Positions 1,117 through 24,727 of a stretch of DNA of 64,000 bases are shown in pieces. Numbering within the stretch: the first letter of the stretch is position 1; each line of letters begins with the position of its first letter. Location of the stretch: positions 1 to 64,000 of the forward strand of contig LSRY02000049.1 in the NCBI GenBank assembly GCA_001643675.2, given 5' to 3'. The position numbers and the translations under genes were made by a program. This DNA is from Monocercomonoides exilis PA203 (lineage: Eukaryota > Protista > Preaxostyla). The notes below the pieces were generated by a model. It did no database searches and was not told where the DNA came from. It saw only the letters and a program-made list of their open reading frames with translations.

Positions 1117-2574
1117 GGTGCTGCACCTGCAGGTTCCGTCCAGAAGCACCACAGAATGGGCTTTCCTTTTGCTTTATTCCTGCCCATGTTAAGCGAGTGG
1201 TGCTTTCTTTCCACTCAAAATTCTTTAAAAACAATTTTTTCCTCGATATTTCTCTTCCCTTCGTTTTGAGCGGAAGAAACCAAAGTGTTTCATATTTTGT
1301 TTATTTTTTATTTTTTAAATTTATGTTTTGTTATTTTTGTGCTTTTTTCTGCTTTTGGCAGAAACAGAAATGAAAAATGAAAAACAAAAAACAGAAAACG
1401 AATCATTAAAAACAGCTTTTATTTTCAACATGCACTTTCTGCTAAGACGCACAAAACCATAGGCACAGCCTCAAATGACACAAAAACACACAAACATCTG
1501 GAACAAGAGAAAGAGAAAGAAAAAGAAAAAGAAAAAATAAAAAAAAAAAATAAGAAGCAATCACAAAACACGAAAAACACCCTTCCCCCAAACACAGCAA
1601 AAAGAAATAAACAAAGCAAAACCCATGTGAGGATGACCCTGTACATCCCTGTCAGCGGGGCGCGCCCCTCCAGAAATGTAACATAAACTCCTCTTTTCCT
1701 TCTTTCTTTGCGCATCCGCTACTGCGGCTTATCACAAATTTTCGAATGCCGTTTATTACGCGCATTTCCCTTCCTCCTCCAGCCTCCTCCCTCACATACC
1801 CTTCACAGCCCTTTCCTCGCTGCTTCCTGCCCTCATTTTTGTTTCTCAGCAAATGCTCTCTCCCTCTCCGCGATCACCATTTTTGGCCATTTTACCATCT
1901 CAACCACAGCTCCCTCCTTATTTTATACACGCTGCTCCCCTCTGCTCTGCACACTCAGCAAAGCAACTTCATTTCACTGTTTGTTGCTCTCGATCATTTC
2001 CCATTCCTTCCGCCTCTCTCCCATACCCACAAGCACACCCAAACACACCCAAGCACACACCCCCAGCCCACCAAAACAATTGCACATGCAACAAAAAAGG
2101 CAGTGTTAGGCTCGGCTGGGCATGCCTGCAGCCTCATAAATACACAGAGCCTCCAAAAACAAAAATCCAAAAAATTCCAATACATACAAATGCAAAGCAG
2201 CACAACACAGCACAGAAAAAAAAATAAAAATAAAAATAAAATAAAATAAAGCAACAAAACCAAAGACAGGCTCTCCTGCAGTTGTGAACTCGCAAATCAT
2301 AAAAACATCGAGCAGCTTGCTCATAGAAAAGTTTGAACAGACAAAAATGATAAAATACACACACACACACACATAAAATTCAAAAATCAAAATATGAACA
2401 GTAACAACAATAAGAACAATGATAATAATTACGATGATGATGCATAATAACGCTGGCACAAAAGCCCATGCGCTGCAAAAGCACATCAAGCCAAGGCATC
2501 AGCCAGCCGCGGCACCTGCGAATTGCTCTCCCAAGCCCACCAGCCACCCCTTCACGCTTTCTTCGCATTCCCAG

Positions 2575-4040
2575 CTACGCCGAAGAGGCGCTGGCCACTT
2601 CCAGCGGGCACTGCGGCGCCATCTCCACCATCTTCATCCGAATCGCCTCGCTCAGCCGCACAGACTCCCCAACCAGCACCGCCTGCCATCTCTCCATGCG
2701 CTTGCGCTCCTCCTCTGCTGCCTGCGCTTTCTCTGTGCTGCTCCAGCTGCACCTTCCAGCTCTGGTGCCTTTGCCGCGCTCGCATGCACCGCCCTCAGCA
2801 CCCCCAACACCCCCAACATTCCCATCATCATCATCTGCTGCATCATCAGCTCCCTCAGTGCTCTCGACACACACAGCTGCTGCACCGCACGATGTGTCCG
2901 TGCCTGCACCCTCGGAGCAGCCATTCGCAGCTGATGCAATAGATGCCAGCGGAGCGTGCGGGACAGGCACGATGTGGCTGCACGGGATATCGGAGCGTTC
3001 TTCCTTGAGCTTGTGGCTGTGCTTGTGTGCGTCCTTGCGCCTGTCCCGCAGCCTGCTCAGCGCACACATGGCGCAGTGCGTGAGGAGCGAGAGCACAACA
3101 TAGATCGGATACGCATAGTTCGCGGTCACAGTGCCCAGCGCCAAGAACGGGTAGATCCACCTGTACAGCAGAATGCAGCCGCATGCGCACACACACAAAA
3201 AAAGAAACAGAAAACAGAAAAGCGACAAAGCAGAAGACTAGACATCGACAAGGAGTCAAAAGGGGGCACACGTGTAGGCTGCATACAGCCACGACATGAA
3301 GATGTAGAACAGATAGTACGCCACAGACATGTACGCGTGCGCCAGGCCAAACCGGATGCCTGTGAAGAAGTACACGTCCACCACAATCAGCACAAAGCTC
3401 AGCCCGTGCGGGTTCACCCCGAACCACAGGTCGTGCCACACGCGGAACTCCTCGTGCCCCGCGCAAGCACCAGCCAGAACGTCAGGATCGCCAGGAAGCT
3501 GCCGTTCACCCCGATCACCGCCAGCACAAACGTTGCCTTTGCCCGCCCCGACGCTGCTGTCTTCGCCGAATGCACCCTCCCTCCGCTCAGGAACCACTCT
3601 GCCTCTCCTTTGCCAAAAGACGCTGCAAACTGCACCCCGGCAGCAGCACCCCGCAAGCAGCGGAAAAAGACAACAGCAACAATCACAATAAAGTGCGCCC
3701 ATGAAAGGGATGAATGAACACACACCAGGAAATAGGCGTATGTGATTAAATACACCTGCTTCGTCAGATACTTCAGCTGCATCGCATCGCCTGCATCCCC
3801 ACAAAAAGGAGAAAGAGAGAGAGGAGAAAGAGAGGAGAAAGCAGCTCAACAGAAAAACAACACAAAGGAGGAGAAGGGCAGACAGACAATGCACGAAACA
3901 ATAAACATCGTCATGTACGCCACCACGCACAGCCGGTACACAAACACCGCTCTCCGCTTCCGCTGCCCAGCCCCGCACACCATCTTGCTGTCTGTGATGT
4001 TCTCGGCCGAAATCCCTGCTGCACTGGCAAAGTTCCCCAT
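2575..4040 (-). CDS. Multi-pass membrane protein, rolling stone / FAR-17a/AIG1-like family; two introns, one frameshift in a G-run near 3457-3460
   Basis: The spliced reading gives MGNF..VYRLCVVAY..QLKYLTKQ..NPHGLSFVLIVVDVYF..AHAYMSVAYYLFYIFMSWLY..WIYPFL. The KYLT, HG..D and WIYPFL motifs match this family. The 3' end is uncertain. Confidence 0.6.
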
Positions 4041-5458
4041 ATGTTGTTTGTGTTATGCCCTCGATCACAAACATTCGCAATCCCAACAGCTCAGCCACTC
4101 CTGCTTTTCCTGCATTTCCTGCTTTTCCTGCATCGCACAATGCATCCCCCTTGTGCATATGCTGATAAGCATTTGCGAGGCACGTGCCTTGGAAGGCTGC
4201 GTGCAAGTTGAAGTGTCCAGAAACGGAGAATAATGAATTGGAAAAAAAAAAACCAAAAAGGAAATGTTTGTGTTCTTGACGAAGTTGAACACAATGGAGG
4301 AGCGATGTGCAAAGTGGCATTGCGGAGCATTTTTTATTTGTTTCTGCGAGCAGAGCGTCTGCAGGAGAAGCCATCAAATTATTGAGCCACGACGATGCTC
4401 AATGAAGAGAGCATTGCAAAATCGATGGCTATTTTTTTCTGGGTGCACAATGAAGAGCCGTGAGGAACTCTGCTGCAGACAGACTCAGAGAATTTTCTTT
4501 TTTTAAAAAAATTCTTTTTTTTGAAAGATGCTTTTGTTCTTTGAAACAGAGGGGTTTCAGCAATGGAACATGTTTGTGCTTTGAAAAAAAAAGTGGAAAA
4601 AAAAGAGCAGAAAGCGCAGTGCAGCCTGCTGCCTTCAGCTGACAGCCTTTTTGCAGAGAGGTTTTCGTTTTCTTTGCAAAGCCTTTTTGCTCCCCCATTT
4701 CTGCAACTCCTCTTGCACGCCCAACTCTCATTTTTCCTTTGAAAAAAAATTTAAAAAATTAAAGCAAAATGAATATAAACACAAACACAAAGACAGAAAC
4801 AAAATGAAAGCAATTGCACCCGAAGCCAAGAAAAGCAAAGCAAAGCAAAAATCACAAAGAATTCTGTTTTTGCTTCAAAAGCGTGACAGCAACAACAATA
4901 TCCTTCACAAAAGAAAGCCCTGCTTCTTTTCCATCATGCAATCCCATCAATCACACCATTTCTTCGCCAGAGACTGCGGCGCCAGCTGTTTCTGATGTTT
5001 TGGTGTTTTGCAGAGGTTGCCGCCTTGTCCAGCCCGAAAACGCACATGAATCAGCGAGGCCAATCAACCCCAATGACTTTTCTGAAAACGTGAACGAGTT
5101 CCCCAGACATTGCCAATTGGTGCTTTCAATTCACAGTAATATTCAATTTAAAAATGACAATTGAAACTGTCTTTTCCATCGCGCTTGATGGAAGAAACAT
5201 GCAGGACGCACGCACACCAAACATTGTAACGAAGAAGATGCGTCTTTAAAGGAATTCCTTGACACTCGACGAAAAGTGCCCGCTCTCTTTCGTTTTTGTT
5301 CCCGTTGCCGGGCTCATCCACATGCTGTTTCGGTTATATTCGGCATCGACGCGCGCAAATGCGTGTTGCTGCGCGAGACTGCATACGGAGCGAAAGTGCA
5401 GACCGTTGAGGAGGAATGAGGCGTTTGAGCACGATCGGCACCCAAAAGCAAAGGCTTG

Positions 5459-8400
5459 ATGATATTGTTTTTGCTTGTTTTGGTGAAAGCGAGTGCGTGC
5501 GGGTACGCAGAATACGAGTGCCGGAAGGTGGAGACGGATAGCGTGATTGTGGGGGAGTTTGTGAAGCGGGCGGGGGAAGGGCCGTTCCCGCCCGACGCGG
5601 AGTCATTGCACTTTGAGGTGGTGGCGGAGACGCGGGACCGGCTGCACATCAAGATTGTGGACAACACAGAGCCGGCGTACGAGGTGGTGGATGTGGTGGA
5701 GGAGGCGGCGGCGGGGTCGGGGAGCGGGGTGGCGTTTGCCGAGTCGGGGTTCCGTGTGTCTGTGACAGAGGACTGCGGGATTGTGGTGGCGCGGCGGAGC
5801 AGCGGGGAGACGATCTTCGACACGCGGCCGGGGTCGGTGAGGCACGGGCTTGCGTACGGGAAGGGGTTTGTGCAGCTGAGCACGGCGGTCGGGGCGAAGC
5901 CGGTGATATACGGGCTGGGGCAGCGGAGGACGCGGTTTGCGCTGCCGTACCCGTTCAACTACACGCTGACGAACCAGGACCGGGGCACGCCTGGGGACGG
6001 GACGAACCACTACGGGACGCATCCGCTGCACGTGGAGCGGCGGGCCGGGGGCAGGATGCATGGGGTGCTGATGCTGACGGCGAGCCCGCTGCAGGTGGAG
6101 ATTGCGGACGGGGAGCTGACGTGGCGGATGATGGGCGGGCTGATCGACCTGTACATCTTCCTGGGCGGGGAGGAGGGGCGGATGGAGGCGGTGGTGGAGG
6201 AGTACACGGAGCTGGTGGGGAGGCCGTGCCTGATCCCGGCGTGGACGCTGGGGCTGCACCAGTGCTACTGGGGGTACGAGAACATGAGTGTGGTGGAGGG
6301 GGTGGTGGAGCGGTACCGGGAGGAGAAGATCCCGCTGGACGCGATGTGGGTGGACATCGACTACATGGACCACTACCGGCTGTTCACGACAGACCCGGTG
6401 CGGTTCCCGAAAGCAGAGTTTGGGGCGATGCTGCGGCGGATGCGGCGGAGGTACGGGGTGAGGTCGGTGGTGATTGTGGACCCGGGGGTGAAGGTGGAGG
6501 AAGGGTACGAGCCGTACAGGGAGCTGGTGGAGAGCGGGATGTACATCAAGGACAGAGAGGGGAGGCCGGCGAGAGGGGCGGTGTGGCCGGGGTCGACGAT
6601 CTTCCCGGACTTTTCTCACCCGGAGATAGGGAAGCTGTGGGGGAAGTGGGTGGGGCGGTTTGTGCGGGAGGTGGGAGTTGACGGGATCTGGAACGACATG
6701 AACGAGATCTCGAACTTCTGCGACGGGAAGTGCGGGCCGGAGCTGAGCGAGGGGTGGGAGGTGGTGCGGGACGAGAAAGGGGAGCCGGTTGTGCGGAAGG
6801 TGCTGCAGAAGAGCGAAGGGCAGAGAGAAGAGGCAGGGGGTGGAGAAGAAAAGGCGGGCGGGGAAGAAGCGTGGGAGAAGAGCAGCCTTGCAGAATACGA
6901 GTGGGTGCCGAGCGAGGATCTGCTGCACCAGTCGCTGGAGCTGGATGCGAGGACGCACTTTGGGCCGTATCTGTTTGCGAAGCAGCTGTACGGGCACCAA
7001 GAGAACCGCGTGACGGCAGAAGCGCTGCGGGAGGCGGTGGAGGTGGTGTGGGTGCAGCCGGAGATGAAGGAAGCAGCGCTGAAAGAAAAGGTGCAGGAGA
7101 AGCTGGGCGAGGCAGCAGCAGCGCAGACAAAGATGGTGGGGAAAGTGAAGGAGCTGTTCAGCCCGAAGGGGAAGGTGCCTGAGAAGGCGTCTGAGGAAGG
7201 GCAAGCAGAAGATACAGCTGCAGAGAAAGAGGAAGAGAAGGTGTCAGAGAAGGCAGCAGCAGTGCGGCCGTTTATTCTGTCGCGGGCGTCGTTTGCAGGG
7301 TCGGGGCGGACGAACACGATCTGGCTGGGAGACAACAACGCGACGTGGGAGGATCTGAAGGACTCGATCAGCGGGGTGCTGACGATGAATGTTCTGGGGA
7401 TGCCGTTCTGCGGGTGCGATGTGGGCGGGTTTTCGGGGGTGACGAGGGCAGAGCTGATGACGCGGTGGGTGCAGCTGGGGAGCTTCCTCTATCCGTTCTT
7501 CCGCTCGCACGCGGCAGTGTTCCAGGAGTCGCACGAGCTGTACAAGTTTGGGGAGCCTTGGACTTCGATCAACAGGGCGTATGTGCTGCACAGGCAGCGT
7601 CTGCAGAGCTACTGGTACACGCTGCTGGTCAACGCACATGAATACGGTGTGTTGCTCTTTTCTTTTCTTTTCTTTTCTTTTCTGTTTTGTGTTGTGAAGA
7701 GGTGGGATGGGAAGAGATGAGATGAGATGAGCCAATGGAGAAATAAAAAATAAAATAAAATAAAATAAAATAAAAAAAGCGTGAGAAATGAAGTTAAAGG
7801 GAAATGAACTGATTGTTATTGTTCATGTTTTCAATTTTTTGTTTTTTTTTCCCATTCTTTCTCATGATTCATTTCTTTCTTTTTTTTTCTGTGGGTGCTC
7901 AATTTTCTGATTGGTTGGCTCTGCTCGATGCGCTGTTTCAGGCACGCCGATGATCCGTTCGCTTGCGATGGAGTTTCCATCTGACGAGAAGAGCGTGGGT
8001 GTTGATACAGAGGCGATGCTGGGGGATGCGCTGCTTGTGATTCCTATTGTGACGCCTGCGCCTGGCGGGGCGAACAGCACCGACGTGTTTGAGCGGAGGG
8101 ATGCGTATTTCCCTCCGTCGACGCGGTGGTACGATTGGTGGGAGCAGAAGGAGGTGGGGTACAGCGGGGAGACGAGGACGCTGGAGGGGAGGCTGGAGTG
8201 GATGCCGGTGTATCTGCGGGGAGGGCGGATTGTGACGGTGCAGCAGACGGTGAAGGAGACGCTGGAGCTGATGCGAGGAGCGCCGCTGACTGTGATTGCG
8301 GGGCTTGACGAGAAAGGAGAGGCGGCGGGAGAGTTTGTGACGGACGACGGGCTGACAGAGCGGACAGAGCGGCTGAGGGCGAAGTTTTGTGTGAAGAAGG

Positions 8401-8816
8401 AAGAGGGAGAAAGGGGAGAGAGGGAAGGGTGGAGCGTGATGGAGATGGATGTTGTGGACAGGTCATTCGAGACGAAGCAGACGGTGGAGGAGGTGGTTGT
8501 GGTGGGGGTGGAGGGCGAGGTGAAGGAGGTGAAGGTGTGGGTGAAGCTGGCAGAAGGGGAAGAGCCGGGGCTGGCAGAAAGCGTGTCGGCTGCGATGAAG
8601 AGGCTGCTGAAGAAAGAGGAAAAGGCGGGTGTCAGCAGCGGGGAGAGGGAAGTGAGGAGCAGCTTTGTGTTTGAGGAGGAGAAGGGCAGGCTGAGTGTGC
8701 GGGTGAAGGAGCAGACGCCGATGAGCAAAGTGAAGGAAATGCGAGTGATGTGGAGGTGCGAGAAGCGGAAAGGCAGAGAAGAAGAGAGTGGTGAAGAAAA
8801 GCAAAAAGAGTTGTAG
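5459..8816 (+). CDS. Glycoside hydrolase family 31 alpha-glucosidase (secreted/lysosomal type), exons 5459-7646 and 7942-8816
   Basis: Signal-like N-terminus MILFLLVLVKASAC. GH31 motifs PLDAMWVDIDYMD, GIWNDMNE (nucleophile), RPFILSR, WLGDN (acid/base), CGCDVGGF and YPFFRSH. The GT-AG intron 7647-7941 joins EYG|TPMIRSLAMEFP in frame. Confidence 0.93.
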
Positions 8817-10125
8817 CATTTGAGTGAAACCTCTTTGGATTGCGACTGTGTGTCTTTTTTTCCCCCCTCCTTCACTTGTTATTTTTTTGTATTCTGATTG
8901 TTTCACAAATTTTTGATTTTGACTTTTCTTCTGATCTTTTTGGCTGTTTGACCGATCCACAGTTTCGGGTCTTGTTAGTTTGGAGCCAAAGAGAATGGTG
9001 CTCGCAGTTTGCCATTGAGACTTTTTGTTTTTGTTTTTGTTGTTGGTTTATTTTTGAATCGTCTTTGTAATTGTCATTTTTAACATTTTTATCATTAGCA
9101 TTGTTATCGATAGTTAAAAGTTTATAAATTGGAGAATCGAAACAGATTATTTTTGGACAGCTTCGGAGTGGTGTTCTATTTTGTTGAAGAAAACACGAAC
9201 AAAGATTTTGAAATGGATGCAACGTGCTTTCCTGACGGAGGCAGGAGGCTTGCAGAAAACAAGAAATCGGAGCTTCTGGGGGAGTGAAATAAAAGTGAGT
9301 GCATTGGAAGGAGAAGAAGGAAGCAAAACGTGCGGGCATCTGCACCCCCCAAAGACAAAGGCTGCTGGGAATGAGAGGAGCAGAACGACGGGGCAAGGAG
9401 CAAGCGCGTTGCAATGGCAAAAAGCGTTGTTTTCTTTTTGATCACTCTTTTGTGAATCAAAAAAAAAGTATCACATTAAATCCAATGAACGCGGAGCGGT
9501 TTCTTCCTGTTTATTCTGCTTGCTTTTTAGAGTTCCCTTCCAAAATAAAACAAAATAATTTTGCAGATTTCTTAGTATTTTCCAAAAGCAAATCAGATTT
9601 TTGATTCCTTCTCCGTTGGCTTGCCCTCACCTCAATCTCCTTCTCCATTTTCAGAGAAACACTTGACGTCAAATGCCAGTTTGCTGATTTCTTGCTGAAT
9701 CATTCAGCAGATTGGGCGAAGGCGAAAGAGTTTGAGACATCTTCGATGACTCGGAGAGGCCTCTTTTGTATTTTTCCTTGGACTGATCGAAAAGACATTT
9801 TGCTTGCTGACAAGCAAGAAACGATCCAGCAACTCAGAAGAAGCACATGGCTGGCCTGCAATTCATTGACAGCTTCCCATGAGAATTTGCATTGTAATCG
9901 GAATGGCACACATATTCAGAGGGGGAAACAGAACACGCAACTTTGTTGTTGCTATCATCAACAATGTGAATGAAACAAAAAAGAAAAAAAGAAAAATGGA
10001 GTTGTGGCTGAGCAGTGATCTGAATCTATTTGAAAGAGAAAACAATATTATGTGACATCGATCACAGAATGAGAGCTGAGAGAGAACGCAGACAGGAAGG
10101 GGCGAACAAATGCAGATTGGAACTG

Positions 10126-13100
10126 ATGGGGCTGACAATAAAAATGTTTGCCTTGTCTGTGTTTTGTGCTGCTTGTGTTGCTTATGAGGCAGAAAGGTCC
10201 GAGATCGAAGCAACAGCTCTTGCAATGGCAAGCGCTTCTTGCAACATAAGTGCTCTTCGGCAAAGTCCGAAATGGTAAAGCAAAGTTGAGAGAGGGGATA
10301 ATACTTGCTGCATTTGCACTGATGACATTTTGAGGAGCAGCCGTTTGGATGGGGGCTCGACTGTGGAAGGGACTGTGCTTGCTGTCAATTCGTCTGTTGC
10401 TCTTGTGGATGCTGAGTTGAGGCAGCTCCTCCGCTTTCCTGCTGTTGCTGTTGATAGGCAGAGTGCAGCACGTGTGGTGTGCTGCAGAATAGTCACAGAG
10501 GAGAAGCAGGGCAGCCCGATTTCGATGTGTGGCGGCTGTGTGTTTCTGCGGAATGTGTCTCTTAGGATGTGTAGCGCAGCCCAGACAGTGCCTTCCCTTG
10601 TATCTGTTGCAGCAGGTGTGCATGGTGTCCCATTTTTTTCAGAGCAGCTGAGCGTGCTGTCGTGTGTGTTTGCCTCGTTTGCGGTGGCTGTGCCTCCGCT
10701 GCTTCCGTGTGCATCGCAGCACATCTCGTCAACCATGTTTGCGAACATCACGCATGCGGATGGGCAGTTGTCACAGCTGCAGAGGAGCACGCGAAAGAGG
10801 GCATGGGAAGCAGAGATAGTGTCGTCAGAGATGAGGAATTGCACGAACCCATACTCGGGAGTGGTTGTTGTGCCGCCTGACGTCTGGTCGATGCATGCGA
10901 ACTCGACTTTTGCAGACTGCCGCGCAACAACTGGGCGGCAAGAGTTTGTGGATGGAACACACGAAGCGTCGGATTGTGTTTTCAGTGTGGTGACAAATGA
11001 GAGCGGGGGTGCATTTTGCTTCAAGGAAAAAGCATCGCTGAGTGTTGTTCGATGCTCGTTCGTGAATTGCTCCGCAAACCAGGGAGGAGCCATTTATTTT
11101 GAATATTCGTCTGGGTTTTTCCGATGTGAAAGATGTGTGGTTGATGGATGCAATGCAAAAGGTGAAACAGGGGGGATCAATCTGAGGGGATGCTCATCAT
11201 CGGTTGAAAAGGAACTGTGATTGGAAACTCTGTTGCCTCAGGAAAAGCGCTGTTTATGTATGCTAATCTCGCATCAGGAGTTCATGTTATGGATTCGAAT
11301 ATTCTGGAAAACGGAAAAACTGTTGATCATTACACAGGTGCTCTTCATTTGTATTATGTGTTTGATGAATTGACAATCAGCAACACTCTGTTTCATTCAA
11401 ACCATGCAAAGACATTTGCAGGATGCATCTTGTTTGGAGATAGTTCAGGACCAAAGTCAGCAAAATATCAGTTGAGCTTTTGTTTTTTTCGGAACAACAC
11501 AGCAACGCAATTGGGAGGGAACGATATTCATATTTCAAACAACAATTGTAATGAAAATCTTACAGATCGCAATTTGACAGGCTGCTATTCGCTGACAGAA
11601 GGCGTGAGGGTTTCAAAATGCACGAGCGGTGGCTATGATTGTTCGGAAAATCAGACATACACGAATTGGCTGCCTGACATTCCGAGTGCATACGAGACAA
11701 GTGTCGACAGCAGGTCGGGGATGGACAGAAGCGACTGTGGATATGCGCCGCTGTGCCAAACGATCCACTTTGCCTTTGGAAGGATTGAAGCAAGGTCGAG
11801 CAACAAGATTGGTGTGAAGGCAGGGAAGTGTGTGGAGGAGGAAACGGAGGTGTCGAGCAGAAGCGTGGTTGTTGAAGGGGAACAGCGCGAAGGGTGCCGG
11901 ATCGAGTCAGACGGGAGCGGGGGATGTGTGTTTGGGATCACCACTGGGCACTTTGTGGGGAGGAGTGTGACGCTTGTGCACAAGAACAGCGAGAGTGGAG
12001 GGGTGGGGTGTTTCTGGCGATGACTGACAACGGGATTGTGGATCTGGTGGGGTGCAACGTGGAGAGTGCGGCAGGTGAAGAGGCACTGCAGGCACCGTTC
12101 ATGACGATGAGCAGGGGAGTGGCAACGCTGGAAGATGTGAAGATGGAAGGGATGAGGTTTGGAGGGAGGGGGGCGATCCAAGGATCAGCGCCGGGATCAG
12201 GGTGTGGGATTGTGGTGAAGGAGTCGAACATGAGCGGGATGGAGGTGTCGGAGGGAAATGGGAGTGTGGTTTGCTTTGCGCTGGGAGGCGGAGGGGAGGT
12301 GGTTGTGAGCAGCTGCAAGGTGAGTGGGTGTGGGTGCGAAAGCGGGTGTGGAGGGAGTGTGTGCGTGAAGATGGAGGGTGGGGGCAGGGTTGTGGTGAAC
12401 GGGACAGAGCGAACACAGTTTGAGTTGTGCAGGGCAGGCGCAGGGAGGGACGGGGCAGGAGGGCTGGGCGGGGCTGTGTTTGTGGAGACGAACAGGGGAG
12501 GCGGGGAGGTGTGGATGGGGAACACGACGTTTGAGAGGTGCACAGCAAAGAAAGGGGCGAAAGTGTTTGTGAGCATCAGCGACCTGTCGAGTGTGATTGT
12601 GCGGGAGCGGTTTTTGGTGGAGCACACAGCAGAGGATGCAGAGGCGTTGAGCGGGTTTGACCGAGATCGGAGCGGGGAGACAGGATATGTGCCGCTGATT
12701 GTGTTCGTGGAGCAGTGGGGCGGGAGGGCGTTTGTTGCCGGGGAGGAAGGGGCAGAGCACTATCGGTGTGGGTTCAGCTTCTATGCATGCAGCACGATTG
12801 AGAAGGCAGTGGAGCATCGGTTTGCGAGCGGGAAAAGAAGGATGGTTTTGGAGGCACCGTTTGTGTTTGACCACGAGATGGTGTTTTCAGGGGAAGAATA
12901 TGAGATGGAAGGGAGGCAAGCACAGAATGAAATCCGGATTGATGGAGCGAGTGGAGCGGGGCAGAGCGGGCTTTTGTGTGTGCAGACGGGGGTGGCAGTC
13001 TCGGATGTGGTGTTTGTTCTTCCGATGTCGATTGGAGGCAGGAATGTGTTTGTGAGGTGTGAGTCCCACGAGCTGAGGTTGGTTCGATGCACCCTAAGGC

Positions 13101-16100
13101 CAGTGGGTTCATTGTCTTCATCGCCATCATTTGCCACAGGTGTCGCAGCATGCACGCTATTGAGGGAAGAACAGAGAAAGATGACATATTCATTTGTGTG
13201 TGTGGTTGATTCAGCGCTTCGTGTGGAATCGCTTGTGGTGGACAGGGGGATGTGTCTGCAGAGGTCGTCGGTGATTGGGTGCAGTGGGGTGTGCGATGTT
13301 GAGCTGAGGGGGTGTGTGTTTGAAGGGGTTGAGAAGACAGAAGGGAGTGGGGCGTGTGTGGAGGGAGAAGTGAGAGGAGAGGGAACAAAGAGAGAGGGAC
13401 GAATTGTGGTGGAAGGGTGCACATTCAGGCGGTGCAAGACAGCGGAGCAGGAGTCGAGTGGGGGCGGGGTGTGTGCAGCGCTTTGGGGGAAGAGCACGTT
13501 GGTGGTGAACGGCACAGGGGTGTTTGAGGAGTGCAAGGCGAGCGAGGGGAGCAGCGGGAAGGGGAGGGGAGGAGGGGTGATGATAAGGGTGAATGATGAA
13601 GAGAGCTGGCTTGGGATATGTAGAGGGGTTGTGTTTTCGAGGGAGAAGCCGAACTGGGCGAGATGGGGGCGAGATGTGTTTGTGGATTGCGGAAGCGGAG
13701 TACTGCTGGAGGGGAAGATCAGTGCGGAGAGTGTCGGGTTTGCGGATCCGTTGGAAATGGCGGATGATGCGCTGGGGGTGTGTGGGGTGGAGAACGGGAG
13801 TGCTGTGCCTGTGATACCTCTGTTTGTGTATTTGCTTGTGCAGCCTGGGAGGATCCGTGTGGATGGCAGGTCAGGAGCAGATCATGTGTTCTGCGGGTTT
13901 GAGTTGTTTGAGTGTCTGACAGTGGACTATTGTTTTGAGGAGCGAAGCAGTGTGAATGCGAGCAGGATAGAAGTGTGCAGCGAAGCAAGGCTGGGAGCGG
14001 AGATGAAGGTTGAGTCGTTTGGGCTGTCGATATGCTCGCAGAGCGAGGCGGAGGCGCGAGTGGATGTGGAGGATGAAGGGGCGCGGAGTGAAGAAGGGCT
14101 CATCAGCTGCTCTTTCCCGTTCAGTGCAAGTGGCACGTTGTTCTGGCTGGCTCGCAGACTGCAAGTGGGGAGGGAGTGGCTGATTCTGTCGAGGGAGTCG
14201 CTGAGGTTGAGCAAATGCCGGGTGGGGTTTGGATTTGAGGATGGGGAATCGGCTGGGTTCGGTGCGATATGTGTGGTGGGAGGGAGGATGGAGCTGAGGG
14301 AGTGTGTGCTGAGTGTGGAGGCGGAGCTGGAGAAGAAGGCAGCGGTGGATGTGAGGGGTTACAGCACTGTGAATGTGGCAGGATGTGTGTTTGAGGGGTG
14401 GCGGAATGGCAGAGGAGACGGAGGCAGCATGGCGATAAGAAGCGAGGGAGGGGAGGCAGGGAGCGCAGAGATCAGGAACACCACGATAAACGGTTGCTCT
14501 TGCGTTGGGGGTTGCGAGCTGAAAGGGGGTGGGATGAGCATTGCGATTTCAGAGGAGGATGAGTTTGTTGTGCACAACGCTTCGTTGAACAGGTGTTCTG
14601 TTCCGTCTGGGAGCAGCGAGGCATGCGGTGCAGAGAGAGGAGTGGGAGGAGGGGTGTTTGTGGAAGCGGTTGGTGGAGCTGCGGGTTTTGCGCTGAGGGA
14701 GATGAAGTTCAGCGGGTGCGATGGGTGGAAGGGGAAGAATGTGTTTGTGTGTGGGAGGGAATTGGACAGGATAGTGGACAAGGAGCATCTGAACTGGACG
14801 ATGAGCAGCGACGAGCTGGAGCAGCTGGAGTGGATGAGTGGGTGGGAGATGAGCAGCACGGGAACAAGGCTTGCGATCCCGCTTGCTGTGTATTTGTGGG
14901 GCAACTTCAGCATGGAGGGGTATGTGGATGGGGCAGGAGGGGAGGACTTCAGCGGGTGTGGGCAGCCCGTGATTCCGTGCAAGACGATCGATGGGATGGT
15001 GAGCATGAGGCTGGGGAGAGCCACAGCGACATCGAAGTGTGTGATTGGTGTGCTGGGGGAGAGTGCTGCGAGAGGGGCAGTGGAGCTGTCGAAGGCAGGG
15101 TCATACAAGTTGTGTGGGTGCGGGGAGAGGAGGCGGATAGTTGTGGAAGACGGTGGAGGTGGAGCGCAGCGGGGGTATTTTGGATGCCATGTGGAGTGCA
15201 GGTTTGAGAAGGCAGAGTTTGCGGTGCCAGACGAGCTGTCTGGGCAGCTGCGGAGTCTGTTTGAATGCGAGGGAGGAAAGGTGGGATTGAGGGACTGCAG
15301 CGTGAAGGCGCGAGAGACGGGGAAAGGAGTGTCGTTCAGCGTGATAAGCGCGGAGTCTGGGGTTGTGGAGGTGGCAGGGCTGGAGGTGGAGGGGATGGAG
15401 TTTGGGGAGCGCAGCATGGTGGTGATGGACGGGAGTGGGGGAGGGGATGTGAGCGGGAGGATGGATGATGTGGAGCTGGACGGAGTGAGCAGCAAGTCAG
15501 GTGGAGGGCTGGCTGAGCTGAGGAGCTGCTCGTGTGTTGTGTGCGAGGGGTGGATGGTTCGGAGTGTGGAGCAGGTGAATGGGAGTGTTGTGCATGCAGA
15601 AGGGGTGAAGGAGCTGAGGATTCGGAGCAGCGAGTTCCGGAGGTGCTGGCGGGAGATCCGGAACGGGAGTGTGCTTGTTGGATGGGTGTGTGGGGGTGAA
15701 GAGGCGGAGGTGTGGAACTGCACGATGGAGGAGGATGGGACAAGAGACGGGTTCTGCGGGGGAAGTGTGTGCTGTGGAGTTGGGGAAGGGGGCATGCTGA
15801 GGTTTGACGAGAGTGTTGTGAGAAAGAGCGAGACGATGGTGCGGAACGGGGTTGGGGGTGGGCTGTATGTGGAGTTCTTGTCGAGGGAGCTGATCTACTC
15901 AGTGAAGAGTGTGGAGTTTGAGGAGAATGTGGCGTGGCGGGGAAGGAACGCGTATGTGGTGTGCGAGGGAGCGCGGGCAATGATCCAGTACGAGCTGTGG
16001 AAAGGGACAACAACAGAGGAGACGATAGAGGAGAACGATTTGTGGGTGTATGAGAAAGGCAGCACAGGAGAGGGAGAGACGATGAGGAAGCATCTGTTTC

Positions 16101-19100
16101 CGGGGAATGAGATGATTGTGTATGTGGACTCGAGCGGGAGAGAAGGGGAAGGGTGCGGGGCGTACGATGACTACGACTTCTGTGCAGACCTGGTGAGCGG
16201 GTATGCTGTGATGAAAGGAGCACAGCACATCCTGCACATTGCAAAGGATGCGGCGCTGAACGGGGAGCTGATGCGGACAAGGGATCCGCTGACGATCCGG
16301 GGAGGGAAAGAGAAGTCGGTGATGAGGGTTGGGGAAGGCGGGCATCTGGTGCAGAAGTCGGAGGTGGAGTCGAACACATTGGTGCTGAGCCAGCTTGTGG
16401 TTGAGCTGGGGAGCGGAGGGGGTGTGGAGGCAGAGCTTGTGTTGGTGGAGAAGGGGAGGGTGGCTGTGGACAACTGTGCATTTGGAGAGGAGAGTGTGGG
16501 AAGGGGATCGGGGATGTGGATCATCGGGATGAGCGGTGGGAGGTGCATGATGGACAATGTGAGTGTGAGGAACATGGAGTTTGAAGAAGGATGTGGAGTG
16601 GTGAGGGTGGATGGAGGGACGGCAGAGATTGGATGCAGCAACTTGACTGCGTGCAGGACAGATGGGAAAGGGCTGGTTGTTGGAGGCGAGGGAGGAGATG
16701 TGAAGATCAGCGGGTGTGCGTTTTTGGGGTGTGAGGCAGGAGGCGGGAGTGCAGTGAGGTTGTGTGGTGGGTCGAGTGGGAGGATTGGGAATGGGAGTGT
16801 GTTTGAGGAGTGCCTGACACAGGGTGGGGAAGGAGGGGCGATGAAGTGGGAATTGAGCGGAGGAGGCAGATGCACGATGGATGGGGCAGGGGTGCGGAGG
16901 AACTGTGCAGAAGGGGAGGAAGGGAGGGGAGGGGGTGTGTTTGTTGGGATTGTGGAGGAAGGGGATACGAACTTTGAGTTTGGGAGTGGCGTTGAGTTTG
17001 GGGGGAACAGGGCGCAGGCAGGCAAGGATGTCAATGTGATGTGCAGCAGCCTGAACAGCTCGATCCAGGCATCGCGGTTTCTGTTTGAGCTGAGGAGTGG
17101 AGAAGGAGTGTGGAGGTGTGGAATGGAGGGGACGGACGAAAGCATGTTTGAGGGGGTGGATGTGGATCTGATGCTGTTTCTGGTGGAGTACAAGGGGGAG
17201 AGTGTGTATGTGTGGAGCGAGGGGATGGACGTTGCAGGGTGTGGGAAGCAGGAAGTGGAGTGTCGCTCGTTTTGGCGGGGGCTGAAGAATTTGAGGGATG
17301 GGGCAGGAGAAAAGAAAGTGTTTGTGAAGGGGTGGACAAGCATCGCAGATTGCCACGATGTGAGTGGGCTGAGGATAAGCGCAAGGGATGATGGGGAAAC
17401 CTCGGAGTTGCGGGTGGGGAGCAAGCTGCCGAGCGGAAGTGGGGGAGGGGTGCTGAGCTCGACAGCGTCTCTGGCGATTGTCTCGCAGGTGTTTGTGCTG
17501 CCAAGCAGTTTTGATGGAGAGGTGGGCTGTGTGATATCAAGCCGAACACGAGAAGGGTTGCTGGTGCTGAGCGGGTGCTCGTTCAGCCTGGTTGAAGAAG
17601 GAGGAAATGGTGAGGCAGGTGAAGGAAGGCTGGGATACGAGCTGGTCTGTGTGGAGGGAGGAAGCGCAGCGATGGAAGACTGCAGGATACGGTGGATGGA
17701 GTTTGAGAAGAGTCCGCTGCTGTTTGTGGAAGCAAGAGTGAGTCTGGAGAATTGTGTGCTGGATGGGGTGCTGTCAGGTGGAGGAGGCGGAGGGGCAGCG
17801 AGGGCTGTGTGTGGAGAGGAAGGTGTGTTTGTGGTTGAGGGAGGCGAGTTTGGCGGGTGCGAGAACGTTGGGGCAGGAAGCAAAGGCGGGGTGTTTTTTG
17901 TTGACAGCAGGACTTCGAGGATGGCAGAGCCGTTTGGATTGAGGGAGATCAGGGTGGAAGGCACGAACAAGGCGGAGATAGGAAAGCAGCTGTTTATTGC
18001 GTCAGATGATCTGAACAAGACAGTGAGAGAGGAGACGATGGGGTGTGTGGTGGGGCTGAGCGGGATGGATGAGAACAGCTGTGTTGGATGGGAGGAGAGG
18101 TTCGGGGTGATAGATGTGAGGGTATTTCTGGTGAAAGCAGTGCTGGAGGTGGTGGCTGTGTCGGCGAGGGGGCATAACATTTTGGGGTGCGGGAAGGACG
18201 AGATGCCGTGCGAGACAGTGTGGGAGGGGATGAGGCACCTGGATTTGGGGAGCAGGGAGAAGGCGCTGGTGATCGTGGATGAAGCACTTGTGTGCGACGA
18301 TCTGGATGTGAGCGATGTGAAGATTGGAGGGATGGGCAGCGAAGAAGATGAGAAGCACTTGTCAAGGATCCGGTTTGAGAAGAGTGGAGAAGGTTGTGGA
18401 GAAGGTGGGGGAGAGATGGGAAATGGGGTGATGCGGAACAAGGGGGTGTTTGAGATGTGGATGATGGAGGTGGGTGCAGGAGAGGGGTTTGGGAATGCAG
18501 AAGGAGCGCTGATTGTGAGCGAAAGGGGAAGAGTGGTTGTGAGGGAGAGTGTGTTTGAAGGGAGGGGAGAGGATGGGGAGAGGAACGAGTTTGCGCTTGT
18601 GGAGATAGCGGGAGGGGAGCTGGTAATGGAGAATGTGGAAATGAAAGGGGTGTGTGTGAGGGGTTGTGTGGTGAGGATGCGGGAAGGGAGCGAGATGAGA
18701 GCGGAAGGGCTGAGTGTTGGAATGGCGCGGCTGTATGATGGAAGTGTTGTGGAGGTGGGAGAAGGGCTGGGTGCCGAGAATGGGAAGAAGGGGACGGTTG
18801 TGGAGATGAACAAGTCGGAGATTGTGGATGTGAAAAGGGAGGTTGGGAGAGGGTGTGTGGTTGACGAGCGGGGGGAGGGGCTGAGGGGGAGTGTGAGTGT
18901 GCGGATGGTGGGGGTGAGGATGCACACGTGCCAGTCGCTGGGATCGCTGGAGGGGGGAGGGGTGTTTGGAGAGCTTCGGGGAGAGGGGCAGATGGAGGTG
19001 GAGAACTGCTGGATGGTGCAGTGCAGCAGCAACGGGGCAGCAGGAAGAGGAGGCGGGGTGTATGTGAGGACGGTGCTGAAGACAGAGCTGAAGCTGGTGG

Positions 19101-22100
19101 TGAAAGAGGGGGAGTTTGACGGGAATGTTGCGCTGTATGGGAGGAATGTGTTTGTGGAGTGCTTTTGCATCGAGGAGCAGATCAACGAGACGCAGTTCCG
19201 GCTGAAGCTGAGCGGGATGGTGCAGGAGCACCTGTTCAGCGGGGTGGACCGGCAGGAGCACACAGAGGTGGTGGATCTGATGAAGTTCATCCGGGTGTAT
19301 GAGGCGTCGACGATATTTGTGGGGAGCAGAGGGGAGAAGAAGGGGAAGAACGCGAGGCAGTGTGGAAGCTTGGAGGAGCCGTGCCTTTCGCTGGAGTATG
19401 GGTGGGGGCATGCGGTGTCGGACTTTGAGTGCCGGCTGCTTGTGATGGGGGAGTGCGAGCTGAACGGGGATGTGGATCTGAGGGAGGTGGTTGTGAAGCC
19501 TGTTGAGAGGGATGTGGGGCGTGTTTGTGTTTGTGTTGGAGGATGTGGAGGTGGTGGTGGAGGAGGTGGAGGAAAAGGAGGAGCGGGAGCAAGAAGCGGT
19601 CTGATGGAGATGAGTGGGAGTGTGGAGGTGGAAAGGGTGGCATTTGAATTGGGGAGTGTGGAGCGGGGGAGCTATGAATGGCTGATGCGAGTGCAGGAAG
19701 GGACGCTGGAGCTGGAAAAGTGCTCGTTTTTGTCGGGTGGGAGTGAAAAGTCGGGGTTTGTGAAAAGGATTGTGTGCTGCTTGGGAGGGGTGTTGGTGGG
19801 AAAGAATGTTGAGATGAGGATGCTGGATGTGGTGTGTGGGGTTGTGTGCAAAGAGGGGATGGTGGAGGTGGAGGGGATGAAGGCGAGCAACATGGACTGT
19901 GGGGAGTGTCTGATGCGCTGCGAGGATAGCTTTGTGGGGATCGATGGAATGAGTGCAAATGGGATTTGTGTGGGGAAAGGGCCATTGGTTGAGGTGGATG
20001 GGAAGGGAAAGGACAAGACGGGGGAGAGGAATGGAAAGAGCTGGATGAGGGGGGTGAGGGCAGAGAACATGAGCAGCGGTGGGGAAACAGCAGTGTTGAA
20101 GGTGGAGAGGTGGATGGATGGGGAGGTGACGAACTGCTCGTTTGGCAGGTGCGATGGGGAAGGGACTGGAGGGAGGCTGATGGTGTTGGGAGGGTGCAAA
20201 GGGGTTGTGGTGAGCACATGTGTTTTGGATGGAAGGGGCAGAGGCGAGGGGGATGAGCGGAGGGGTGGGAATTGGGAGGGAGAAGTGTGCAAATGGAATG
20301 GATCGGCAGGGGAGTTTGAAGGATGCGAGGCGGTTGTGAAAGACACAACAGTCTCGAATTCAGGAGAGGGCGGGCTTTCTGTTTGTGGAGGAAGTGTGGA
20401 GATTGAAGATGGGAAGTTTGAGAACAACAACCCATCAATTGAAGGATATCCCTCAATGAGAAGAAACATTCTCTGCTCCGATAATGGAGTGTTGAATGTG
20501 ATGAGCCTGAAAGGAGGAGACGGATGGGAAAGAAACACATCCTTGTGGATATTGAATGAAGGATGTGAATTGGGTGGGATTGCTTCTGAGAGAGCATCAT
20601 CGCTGTTCATCCCAGTTGTGGAAGAGGCGAGGAATGAGACAGCATCTGATGGGAGAACAATCATCACGCTGAGTGGGAGACTTCTTCTTCCGTGCAATGT
20701 TTGGTTGAAGTTGAGCTTCAGGAATGGAAGGGAAGAAGTGGTTGAGAGCTATGGGGTTGGTGAAAGGGAAAGTGTGTCAGAGAACGAAATTGTTGCTGCT
20801 GTTTCATCGGGTCAGATGGCAATAGTGGGAGCAGAGACAGAAGTGTCTGTGAGTCTTCTATTTGGCAATCTTGATACTCCATCTGCCACTGATTCTTTCA
20901 TATTGAAGAACAGAAGCGATCCCAAGGCAACTGAAGATGAAAGAATTGTTGAAGGAGGAAAAAAGGAAAGATCAATATGGCCAATAATCGTAATTGTGCT
21001 TGTTGTGATTTTGCTGATAGTTCTTATCGTTGCAGTTGCATTTATTATTCGATGGAAGAAGGCAAAGGATGAGAACAACGATTTGAGAGAAATTGTGAAT
21101 GATAACATCAGAAAAGATCCGAAGGCATTTGAGATGGTGACGATGGAAATGTCACCGGAGGAGCAATGGAGAAGAGCAGAGAGGGAAGCTGAGAAGAAGA
21201 ACGAAGAGAGGATCAAGAGGAGGGTGTATGCGAAAAGTCTGCAGCATTCAGAGTCATCAGAGCATTTGTTGAGTGAGAATGGATCGACTGAATACATATT
21301 TGGGAGTGATTCAGACAAGATCCCTCAATGGATACTGGAGAAGGTGGATGAGAAGGAGGAGGAAGAAGAGACAAATAAGAGAACACCTTCTCCATCCGTC
21401 TCATCCACTTCAACAACTGATTCAGATTCTTCTTTTGTTCGAGTGGAGGATTTGTGTCCAACAACATCATCGATGTCGAATCTGGTGGATGCGATGGCTT
21501 GCTCATCTCCACATGAAAAGCTGATCGTGGACTTGAGGGATTCGCTGTTCATGTTATTACATGGAAGGAACAAGACAAAGGAGATGGCAATTGGATGTCT
21601 TCAAGAGAGGGAGCAAACTGCTGCCCAAATCCTGTTCTGGGTGGCGAATGGAGCACTTCATTCATTTGATGAATGTGAAGTGCCACTTCAGTCGCTGACA
21701 AATCTGAGTCCACACATTGTGCTGTTCTCAGAGCATATGGTGATCTGCATTGCCAAGCATTCCGACTTCTCTTCAGATGATTTTGAGTCGTCATCCATCT
21801 CTTCATCAAGTGTTTTCACATCAGCAAGTGATGATGATGACAGAGACTCTCTGCTCTCGTCTGCCTTTGAGGATGAGGATGATTTCAAAAAAGAGTGTTT
21901 GAGGTGGAAGGCGCCAGAGCTGCTGAATGGGAGGAAGAAGCATGCGACGAAGAAGACAGTTGTGCTTTCGGTTGGGATGATGATGTGGGAGTGCCTGACG
22001 CTTGATGTCCCGTTTGGGAAGTATGAGGCGGAGGTGGCAGGGCAGAAGATGGTGAACGGAGAGAGGCCGTGTGGAGGGGAGAGTGAGGCAAGTGGGATGC

Positions 22101-22327
22101 ATGAGATGGTGAAGGGATGCTGGAAGGCAGACAGTGGGGAAAGGCCAACGTTGCCTGGTGTGACGCGGAAGTGCTTTGAATTCTTTCCGGCTGGGGCGAC
22201 AGTGGTGACGATGAGCGATGCGGTGGGGTGTGAGGGTGGGAGCGAGGATGCAGCCAACAGCGAAGAGATGGAGAGCATGATTGGAGAGAGCGAGCTGAGT
22301 GTAGTGCGAGGCTCGCCAGCCCAATGA
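10126..22327 (+). pseudogene. Giant (~4,000 aa) receptor-like protein: signal peptide, GGA/Cys-rich parallel beta-helix-like repeats, single TM, C-terminal pseudokinase; left copy has a premature TAA (10276) and two 1-nt deletions (~11207, ~12002)
   Basis: ORFs 10030-10278, 10330-11220, 11217-12023 and 11894-22327 align end-to-end with the right-arm copy. Repeated GGAIY/GGGVFV..F..N and CG...PC.T/S motifs. TM IWPIIVIVLVVILLIVLIVAVAFII. Kinase C-lobe motifs RWKAPELL..VGMMMWECLTLDVPF..GERP. Confidence 0.75.
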
Positions 22328-23269
22328 AGAAACTGGGCACTGGAGCAGAATCGTGAAAGTGAATGCATATGCGAGCGAAAATGTGTGGAGGAAATGAATT
22401 GAGAATGAGCAATCGATGGGGTCTGACCTGGTGGGTGGAATAACGAAAGGAAGGCAGAGGACGGATGAAAACAATGATGATTGGAGTTGGCGAATGGAAT
22501 GGAAATGGGACTGGGAATAGTTGGTGGTGTGTGAGTTCAACTCTTTCACTGAAAGGGTGTTGAATGGAGCACTTGTGGAAGGGTGGTGCGGTGGGGTTCA
22601 AGGAGCGGAGAGAAGCGGAGTTGTCAGCTGGTGCATTTGTGGAAGTGCTTTCGAACAATGGAGAGCTTTTTCATTCATTCATTTGTTTGTTTGTTTATTC
22701 ATTATTTTTTTTTTATTGTGAGTTTTTTTATATTTTGTGTGTGTGTGTGTGTGTGTGTGTGAATTTTTGTTGTTGGCAGTGCTGAATGGTATGGGGATTG
22801 CTGATCTTGTTGAACAATCGAATTGTGCCATCTTTTGATTGGTGCTTTTTTCTCTGTTGGCTTCAACATTTTTTGATGCAGAACAAATCGAAAAACACTT
22901 TGAAAAAATACAGAACCAGAACCAACAGCTCTGCTGACATTTCTTTGTCCACTTTCTCTTTCGAAAGCGTCAAATTGTTCATTTCTTTCGTTCCTTTTCA
23001 TTTTCAACCATCTCTTCCATTTTCTCGCTTTGAGCTGCAGTTGAACCATTCCAACAATTCAGAAGACTCTGATGTTTCATATCACTTCCGAAGAAGAGGA
23101 AACAACAAAACATGAAAAGGAGCTGCTCACTGTGAAGAGAGAAGAAACTCCTCGTGAAAAGAGGAAGAGGCATTCCTTGGAATTCACACTTTTTCAAATA
23201 CTGTTTTGATGGCTGAAGGTCAAAACACCATTTGAAAAACCCATGGAAACGCATCTGCCAAAACAACAC

Positions 23270-23800
23270 TTTTGAAAAACAAAGATGCCGATGATGAGAA
23301 GTCGGAATTGCTGGAATGCTCGGGCTTCAAAAACACAAGTTAACAACTGCTCTGTATTTGTGAAATGTGCAGTGTGTGGAGCGAAGGTCACAACTTCGAT
23401 CTCTGCTTCCTTGAATATTTCACGCATAGGAGGATTTGAACTGCATGATTGCATGAGCAGAGGAATCAATCTGAGGCATTATTCTCTTCAGTCACATTTT
23501 CTTCATTCGGTGATGGATGGAAGAAGAACAACAAACGAGAGCTTGTTGAGTGATGTTTGATCCATCCAAAATTGAATTTGGTGAAATATCAAGAGAAGGT
23601 GAAAATAGCATTGAATGCTTTTTTTGTTGAGTTGGAGATGGAGCTGAACAATTGAGTGAAGTGCGAAGCAATGTGCAGCGATTCCTGAATAAAGAGAGTT
23701 GTTTGGACTCGGTTCGACAGCTTTTTTGAATCGAGATTGTTCATCAGCAGGATGAGCAAGGACACAGCTCGATGAAATTGGAATTCAATGCGAAGACTCA
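23270..23800 (-). mobile_element. Degenerate pogo/Tc1-mariner-type (DDE_1-like) transposase relic, left arm
   Basis: Broken frames give ADE, WMDQTSLNKLSFVVLLP, IDSSAH and EIEVVTFAPHTAH..LTCVF. These follow the DDE_1 motif order N-x-DE / GWM..F.P / LLlD...H / lPphttH.lQPlD..vF. Many stops are present. Confidence 0.6.
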
Positions 23801-24239
23801 TTCATGCTGAATGGCAATTCTTCTGAAAAATGATGTTTTTCTTGAGTTTTTCGTAAAGTCTCTTCTGCTCCATTTTCAAGCAAAAACAAACATCCCATTT
23901 TGAGTGCGGATTGCAGATCCAACACACACACTTTCTCGAAGATGTTATTTATGGCTTGATTATTTTATTTTTTCGTTAAGCGAAATTAATTGAGTTGAAA
24001 CGAAGAGTTGATTGAAACAAAAGATTATTTTTCACATTTTGAAACCGAACAAAAGCGATCTTTCAAAAAGGAAAAAGATTCATGAATCATTTCATTCCGT
24101 TTTTGCAAAGATGTTTCATTGGATTGAAAACATCTTCTTTGAAGCAATCAATCGACCAATCGTCACTTGCTTTCTCTGCGATGTTTTCTGTGCCATACGA
24201 TCCCCTATTAATTTGAATATCGTATTCAAAATGCAATAT

Positions 24240-24725: not shown

Positions 24726-24727
24726 TG

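Follow-up and report, generated by a model that had tools for sequence, protein, structure and literature searches.

Why should two copies of one giant gene be almost the same over most of their length and heavily different in a few short blocks near the 3' end? This question is raised by the first 64 kb of contig 46 (C46) of Monocercomonoides exilis PA203 (GenBank assembly GCA_001643675.2, contig LSRY02000049.1, positions 1 to 64,000), referred to here as the window. The window is dominated by an inverted duplication, and each arm carries one GH31 glycosidase gene and one giant gene. The giant genes, A in the left arm and B in the right arm, encode a protein with a signal-peptide-like start, an ectodomain of about 3,600 residues, one transmembrane (TM) helix and a tail of about 430 residues, in this order. 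The divergence of the tails is probably explained by homology-limited interlocus gene conversion, in other words, by concerted evolution of the C-terminal module of these genes. Positions are those of the window and refer to A unless B or another contig is named; the genome searched comprised 82,301,135 bases in 101 contigs.

Distribution of the differences between the copies

The upstream part of the arm had 0.0115 substitutions per site between the two arms, and the ectodomain (10145-20954) had 0.0207. For the tail (20955-22108) the value rose to 0.1455, and for the 3' end with its flank (22109-24217) it was 0.0289. A preliminary description of the window had stated that heavy divergence is confined to the TM, juxtamembrane and pseudokinase part and that the ectodomains differ only by scattered substitutions. 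This was confirmed: the divergence was 14.6% in the tail, compared with 2.1% in the ectodomain and about 1.9% over the rest of the arms, including 1.9 kb past the stop codon. The tail contained 166 substitutions, whereas 21.4 were expected (Poisson p = 6e-87). These differences are sharply clustered: a 50-nt bin of the tail could contain none or as many as 19, and the index of dispersion was 4.85 there (chi-square p = 4e-13), compared with 1.26 in the ectodomain.

The arrangement of the blocks in the alignment of the arms was also as described before: a TM block, a block with indels, a block of synonymous changes and a block at 22020-22110, with near-identical tracts between them. The two peptide pairs quoted in that description read exactly so in the translation. 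The TM and juxtamembrane region (20960-21125) is about 35% different between A and B, that is, about 66% identical, and is directly followed by a long tract without any difference (Table 1). The region 21300-21420 contains in-frame indels of 12 and 9 nt. Only one difference is found in 21641-21745. The region 22015-22108 is again heavily different; 22109-22340 is near-identical, and the 3' flank of the arms keeps approximately 97-99% identity. Since A and B share the sequence on either side of every patch, the patches are considered to be products of conversion, not of a single crossover.

The character of the codon differences varied from patch to patch. In the TM block, 24 were non-synonymous and 15 synonymous, and in 22015-22108 the numbers were 14 and 6. 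In 21421-21640, 20 synonymous differences were found against 5 non-synonymous ones. This fits imported DNA that had already been under purifying selection, rather than hypermutation.

Paralog tracts, trees and reads

The C-terminal module (the last ectodomain cap, stalk, TM helix and tail) has approximately 78-88% DNA identity to hundreds of paralogs; in the searches with the tail, matches of about 78-83% pointed to hundreds to about 1000 places genome-wide. The genome was searched block by block, and the best 40 candidates were scored per search; first-look candidates numbered 1064, 970 and 979, and 40 of the 40 scored matched in each case. A and B were then aligned with 65 distinct paralog modules out of 70 fetched loci. 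Statements on the family as a whole rest on these 65 paralogs and on 6 gene pairs. The limits of the module can be seen from the matches: those to 18900-20900 start at query positions 1370-1477, and most matches to the tail stop at about position 1114 of 1376.

In the TM/juxtamembrane block, neither arm was among the 40 best genome matches of the other, and paralogs reached 92% identity with A and 89% with B. Over 20963-21049, A agrees with two loci on contig 63, L032 and L033 (C63:171434- and C63:269881+), at 87 of 87 and 86 of 87 positions. The tract common to A and these loci starts at about 20862, inside the stalk. B agrees here with the type found on contigs 60 and 63 (L003/L071/L075), at 47 of 48 positions over 20986-21033. 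In the adjoining juxtamembrane patch the relationship changes. A agrees with L075 (C60:6715-) at 68 of 69 positions over 21056-21124 and with L073 at 54 of 54, and B is of the type of a cluster on contig 8 (L038-L042; 30/31 to 35/37, the latter over 21079-21115). This contig-8 cluster is the nearest to both copies in the stalk. All four combinations of TM and juxtamembrane types are present, namely in A, in B, in L032/L033 and in L075/L003.

Similar relationships are observed further downstream. Many paralogs have the same 12-nt indel state as A in patch 3, whereas the deletion state of B is that of the C60/C63 subfamily, with agreement at 31 of 34 positions over 21346-21391. B also has a tandem duplication of 9 nt (at A 21399), which occurred in 0 of the 65 paralogs; to judge from this alignment, it arose de novo by slippage and not by conversion. 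In the acidic patch 5, B agrees with L065 (C58:597341) at 79 of 84 positions over 21783-21865. In patch 6, A agrees with the C60/C63/C65 subfamily (L003/L071) at 81 of 84 positions over 22021-22104 and with L074 at 37 of 37, and the flanks are common to A and B. The version of B in 22015-22108 had no match elsewhere, either among the best 40 genome matches or among the 65 paralogs, and is probably the original one. The best paralog tracts for most blocks were 97-100% identical to one copy, compared with 61-70% between the arms. Paralogs nearly identical to one copy only could thus be found for most blocks, the exception being 21421-21640.

Block-wise maximum-likelihood trees were discordant. 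A and B are sisters in the stalk, with a support of 100 in the SH-like approximate likelihood ratio test (SH-aLRT), and they are identical in 21148-21300. The tree of the TM block places A with L032/L033 but B with the C60 type (support 95). In the juxtamembrane tree, A and B fall into different supported clades, and in 22015-22108 A groups with the C60/C63/C65 subfamily (support 90), apart from B. A permutation test of the GENECONV type gave a similar picture: A and L032 agree at 128 consecutive polymorphic sites, compared with 74% agreement overall (p <= 0.0005). Dozens of other paralog pairs showed matched runs of 50-164 polymorphic sites, some of them in the stalk. This means that mosaicism is a property of the family, at least in the sampled part. 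A further comparison was uninformative because the family is too polymorphic: both states of an A/B difference were present in at least 3 paralogs at 141 of 166 sites in the tail and at 7 of 9 in the stalk (Fisher p = 0.63). Segmental gene conversion from other family members, as proposed in the preliminary description, is supported by paralog tracts of 97-100% identity, discordant block trees, and significant permutation runs, which were found for A and for many other pairs.

The junctions in A are present in reads. Logan unitigs from DNA runs of 2016 and 2022 (same sample) covered A-specific stretches with 0 differences. One of them (21027-21109) crosses the switch of types at 21058/59 with at least 31 nt on each side, and another (21988-22049) crosses the left edge of the 22015-22108 block. 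Unitigs also cover A at 21272-21364 and 21753-21889 without difference. Contigs of an independent RNA study carry the A-specific sequence of 21271-21369, 21481-21589 and 21753-21885, which is weak evidence for transcription of copy A. The alternative letters that were compared with copy B (20542, 20566, 20594, 20756 and 22288-22303) proved to be its states; therefore, the reads contain both arms. The divergent blocks themselves showed no alternative letters, although contigs would hide rare variants. It should be mentioned that RNA-library contigs over 20888-21044 carry two other letters, which fits the TC at 20902-20903 of L032; this suggests that this contig-63 paralog is transcribed.

Other gene pairs showed how the same module behaves elsewhere. 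In the convergent genes L021 and L020 on contig 18, the proteins are 100% identical over the last ~665 residues, and this identity continues through about 0.8 kb of 3' flank. Upstream, they are only ~20-25% identical, and both open reading frames (ORFs) are unbroken across the boundary. L046 and L047 (C26:431778-447420) likewise have 100% identical C-terminal modules and 3' flanks. The ectodomains in these two convergent pairs are only ~20-33% identical, with an abrupt switch at the start of the conserved module, and the ORFs of both pairs continue through it without interruption. Such identical modules on unrelated ectodomains are an indirect hint that arm identity may be maintained by ongoing conversion and not by recent origin. 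L017 and L027 have identical tails apart from the TM/juxtamembrane position, where an island is 10-14% diverged. L032 and L033 repeat the pattern of A and B: the ectodomains are 96-97% identical, and blocks of the tail are 11-25% different. Of 60 paralog tails examined, 59 were intact ORFs of 441-479 aa joined to their own ectodomain ORFs.

Probable interlocus conversion and its alternatives

These features are probably to be explained as follows. An inverted segmental duplication of at least 24 kb would have produced the two copies of the giant receptor-like gene, which are now about 2% diverged. Then, at least 5 or 6 short tracts of approximately 50-200 nt in the C-terminal module of one copy or the other would have been overwritten through non-allelic (interlocus) gene conversion, the donors being members of the tyrosine-kinase-like (TKL) family on other contigs. 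Both copies seem to have been recipients. The process would act only where paralogs are similar enough, that is, in the stalk, the TM helix and the dead-kinase tail (about 80% DNA identity). Across the family, concerted evolution would shuffle the module and locally homogenize it, so that the divergence of A and B might be a by-product. We infer the direction of each transfer, the order of events (after the duplication) and the lack of any selection or dedicated machinery.

Parsimony suggests directions for three of the patches. In 22015-22108, A seems to be the recipient, since the same version occurs in six members of the subfamily within their own flanks and the version of B has no relative elsewhere, like the unique 3' end of the gene. 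In the juxtamembrane patch, B keeps the contig-8 type, which matches the stalk of both copies; A might therefore have been overwritten there. In the TM block, B, which carries the contig-60 type, would be the recipient. The restriction to the tail can be understood in the same way. In a search with 18900-20900, the partner arm was the sole DNA-level match to the first 1370 nt, and similarity to paralogs (70-88%) began at about 20270. Since 18900-20270 has no paralog except B, there is no possible donor, and this part of the ectodomain cannot be converted. The earlier idea that a system continually rewrites the tail while the ectodomain is kept is thus not needed: the ectodomain lacks donors, and the module is the only substrate.

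Several points weigh against this explanation. No near-identical donor was found for 21421-21640 or for A in 21746-21870, where the best 80-nt windows were 88-94% identical. The stalk (20270-20954) has paralogs of 80-95% identity, yet it contains no large A/B patch; with about 5 events this is compatible with chance (p ~0.17, our own rough estimate). The 65 paralogs compared are out of hundreds, and the panel was picked for its resemblance to A and B. Only A has read support; the contigs that provide it are from the same strain, and the assembly may have been polished with some of the read runs. Furthermore, A could instead be the donor to L032/L033 and L075.

Among the alternatives, it might be supposed that A and B were once different members of the family and that arm-to-arm conversion homogenized the 24-kb arms, sparing islands in the tail. 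Palindromic pairs with fully homogenized tails do exist, the island in the otherwise identical arms of L017/L027 is at the same TM/juxtamembrane position, and the transfers between A and its paralogs can be read in either direction. However, the unrelated GH31 gene and the intergenic DNA are uniformly 1-3% diverged, and there is no other island in 24 kb. The tracts of A are 99-100% identical to paralogs, at or above the background similarity of A and B. In addition, two consistent lineages cannot be traced: the C60 type is found in the TM block of B but in the juxtamembrane and 22015-22108 patches of A. The occurrence of A's version of 22015-22108 with their own flanks in six subfamily members also makes A the recipient there. 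Such residual islands are therefore considered unlikely. Errors of assembly or polishing are much less probable still. Canu, Nanopolish and ten Pilon rounds went into the assembly, and according to its authors multi-copy regions are polished less well (PMC8767320); mis-mapped short reads of paralogs or a mixed Canu consensus might have written foreign patches into the arms, and the frameshifting indels of 1-2 nt between the arms do resemble residual errors. The concern that the blocks are polishing artefacts, already raised in the preliminary description, is not supported at the junctions of A, because raw-read unitigs of two runs span them without difference. RNA-library contigs carry the A-specific blocks, the patches keep the reading frame, the in-frame 12-nt indel states are common to paralogs, and many loci show a mosaic of the same kind.

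Interlocus conversion might also be directed, that is, selected or programmed so as to give new signalling combinations of TM, juxtamembrane and pseudokinase parts. Several patches have accumulated in 1.15 kb within the time of about 2% point divergence, all four TM/juxtamembrane combinations occur, and nearly all paralog tails keep intact ORFs, but none of these observations is specific. Conversion limited by homology predicts the same pattern without targeting, and the same process homogenizes the tails of other pairs. No silent-cassette or expression-site architecture was seen, the ORFs of the spacer have no Pfam recombinase or reverse transcriptase, and no read-level heterogeneity was found in the blocks, though contigs hide rare variants. 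The changes in 21421-21640 are, as noted, mostly synonymous. Directed diversification is accordingly very unlikely, and the proposal of a reverse form of antigenic variation, or of an undescribed diversification system, found no support: the tails of other pairs have been made identical, and neither an expression site nor silent cassettes could be seen. Local hypermutation, or positive selection on point mutations of the tail, is hardly credible. The non-synonymous excess in the TM block and in 22015-22108 would be in its favor, but divergence of up to 35% adjoins 174 identical bases, most of the variant states, indels included, occur unchanged in paralogs, and the opposite excess is found in 21421-21640.

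A separate idea, which we regard as improbable, is that the C-terminal module with its 3' flank is a selected recombination handle joining ectodomains to TM/signalling modules. It comes from the high conservation of the module over about 1000 genes together with the excess of tail-to-tail palindromic pairs. If it were true, it would give a combinatorial receptor repertoire for a gut flagellate, possibly with somatic rates that are measurable in culture.

Related systems, the protein and the locus

The case of A and B is a new example of a known process, interlocus gene conversion, in a published TKL family; no new molecular mechanism is revealed. The TKL ('PTK') genes are reported to be the largest gene family of M. 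exilis, with 332 genes, 320 of them TKL (PMC6759080), and the family overlaps the 'unclassified repeats' of the long-read assembly (PMC8767320). The tails of A and B resemble this family in their match to PF07714 above the gathering score and in their huge copy number, and differ from it in that only the kinase C-lobe is detectable. The retrieved passages of both papers do not mention giant ectodomains, loss of the catalytic half, palindromic pairs or mosaic conversion.

Among other organisms, the var genes of Plasmodium falciparum undergo mitotic ectopic recombination and gene conversion (PMC4270465, PMC6532940). As in the present case, short in-frame chimeric tracts bounded by identity are formed between paralogs of a large surface family on different chromosomes. 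The difference is that the exposed antigenic domain is exchanged in var, leading to antigen diversity, whereas here the TM and cytoplasmic module is exchanged and the ectodomain is untouched; M. exilis is regarded as a commensal (PMC6759080). Segmental (mosaic) gene conversion is also described for the variant surface glycoprotein (VSG) genes of Trypanosoma brucei (PMC13233330). Patchwise copying from a large archive of paralogs is common to both systems. VSG conversion needs an expression site and antibody selection and affects the exposed N-terminal domain; none of these was seen for A and B. The ampliconic palindromes of the human Y chromosome, inverted repeats with a unique spacer and arms of 98-100% identity, undergo arm-to-arm gene conversion. 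They resemble the present locus in having inverted repeat arms and a spacer, and also the convergent neighbors with perfectly identical 3' modules; unlike them, the arms of A and B have further exchange partners among third-party paralogs, and this lowers their similarity locally. The transmembrane kinases of Entamoeba histolytica form a large family (PMC2880585, PMC2211552). They are similar in being single-pass and receptor-like: their ectodomains vary, their tails are kinases or kinase-like, and the organism is an anaerobic protist of the gut. Only the kinase fold is common, however: their ectodomains are Cys-rich, whereas a weak lead to beta-helix/PMP-like proteins was obtained here. Segmental conversion of the tail is not mentioned in these abstracts.

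The common module of stalk, TM helix and dead kinase is thus a genome-wide substrate for short-tract ectopic conversion in the largest family of Monocercomonoides, and tracts have been exchanged between contigs at 99-100% identity. Phylogenies and orthology calls from the kinase part of the family will mislead, and repeat annotation and polishing of the module regions need long reads. The family is also a natural system in which homology thresholds and tract lengths of mitotic gene conversion could be measured in a metamonad. Monocercomonoides is an amitochondriate model protist, and the result shows how its largest gene family evolves.

In the preliminary description, the tail was called a pseudokinase. 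A kinase-like C-lobe is indeed present: PF07714 matched the two tails with 36.3 and 39.0 bits (gathering cut-off, 23.1). The match is restricted to positions 162-254 of the 258 of the profile, so that only this part of a kinase can be recognized. The tail can be aligned with CSK between the APE motif and subdomain XI. For the part before this motif, neither the profile search nor the CSK alignment gave a sequence match to an N-lobe (Gly-loop, VAIK lysine), and the family consensus, when inspected by eye, showed neither HRD nor DFG. When the tail was modelled with AlphaFold2 from a 42-sequence family alignment, the model contained no beta-sheet lobe, but its confidence was low (mean pLDDT, the predicted local distance difference test, 47.6). 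A helix at tail residues 9-54 had a pLDDT of about 80. The tail is therefore likely, on sequence grounds, to be a pseudokinase in the form of a dead half-kinase that lacks the catalytic half. The ectodomain gave no Pfam match, and protein-language-model clusters provided only weak leads (beta-helix, chlamydial-PMP and DUF1565-like clusters, the nearest from Preaxostyla). Its codon differences between A and B were 45 synonymous and 65 non-synonymous, which suggests relaxed or diversifying selection.

Table 1. Positions of the features discussed
Feature	Position	Strand	Basis or remark
Left arm	1..24217	+	Begins at contig end; BLAST
Right arm	44048..64000	-	Runs on beyond the window to C46:68310
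Gene A, giant type-I membrane protein	10144..22327	+	Start placed by homology to B
Gene B, partner copy	45911..58097	-	Signal-peptide-like start near 58097
Conserved C-terminal module of A (last ectodomain cap, stalk, TM, tail)	20270..22069	+	Paralog similarity
TM helix of A	20975..21049	+	Translation; B counterpart ~47186-47260
Kinase-like C-lobe remnant of A (subdomains VIII-XI)	21881..22162	+	PF07714, CSK alignment; B counterpart 46076-46357
Mosaic tail of B	46130..47272	-	Counterpart of A 20963-22108
Patch 1 (TM)	20963..21058	+	A = L032/L033; B = C60/C63 type
Patch 2 (juxtamembrane)	21059..21125	+	A = L075, L073; B = contig-8 cluster
Tract identical in A and B	21126..21299	+	0 differences in 174 nt
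Patch 3	21300..21420	+	12-nt indel states; 9-nt duplication in B
Patch 4	21421..21640	+	Mostly synonymous; short B-like runs only in paralogs
Patch 5 (acidic Ser/Asp-rich loop)	21746..21870	+	B = L065
Patch 6	22015..22108	+	A = C60/C63/C65 subfamily
L021, L020	L021:1-4121 and L020:1-4121 (C18:809076-816594)		Identical module, unlike ectodomains

In gene A, the ORF 11894-22327 is intact; upstream, the frame is broken at 11206 and 11999, where A and B differ by indels of 1 nt. In gene B, a 2-nt indel at 53932 splits the gene into the ORFs 53841-58211 and 45911-53929. Each copy is broken into several ORFs where the other copy stays open; the indel at 11999 in A is 1 nt in a G-run, and that at 53932 in B is 2 nt in a GT repeat. 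Either nanopore errors were left behind in a duplicated region that was polished poorly, or these frameshifting indels reflect real pseudogenization.

In the BLAST comparison, 4271-24217 pairs with 64000-44048 at an identity of 96.8% including gaps. The region 1-4270 matches C46:64001-68310(-) at 99%, so that the right arm extends 4.3 kb past the window. The arms thus measure at least 24.2 kb, share about 98% identity and enclose a spacer of about 19.8 kb. A telomere repeat was looked for at the contig end, where the left arm begins, and none was found. A third copy of the outermost 4.25 kb (95%) is located at C63:2242-6529, at the start of contig 63, which also carries the TM partners of A, L032 and L033.

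Equal-scoring neighbor pairs among the matches listed were counted by hand: 23 pairs, in addition to that of the window, were convergent, compared with 3 divergent and 2 tandem ones. Convergent examples are C18:810576/815094, C62:9024/15384, C29:712448/717988, C6:726812/732454 and C75:1834/8378. Convergent identical tails might be taken for terminal inverted repeats of giant transposons. This idea fails for L021/L020: the ectodomains of the two genes differ, each ORF continues without a break into the module that both have in common, and the spacer of 1.85 kb holds only an ORF of 106 aa.

The spacer of the window contains four large ORFs, of 683, 425, 450 and 1642 aa, at 30585-35380 (+) and 36460-41388 (-). 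They gave no Pfam match even at E = 1, and no transposase, recombinase or reverse transcriptase was recognized among them. The GH31 glycosyl hydrolase genes, which were duplicated with the arms, are at 5456-8813 and 59394-62812; each consists of two ORFs, separated by an intron or a frameshift. On the coding strand of the ectodomain (12000-20000 and 48000-56000), G+C is 57-59% and the GC skew ranges from +0.54 to +0.66. Next to the arms (24001-30000 and 42001-44000), the spacer has approximately 26-28% G+C.

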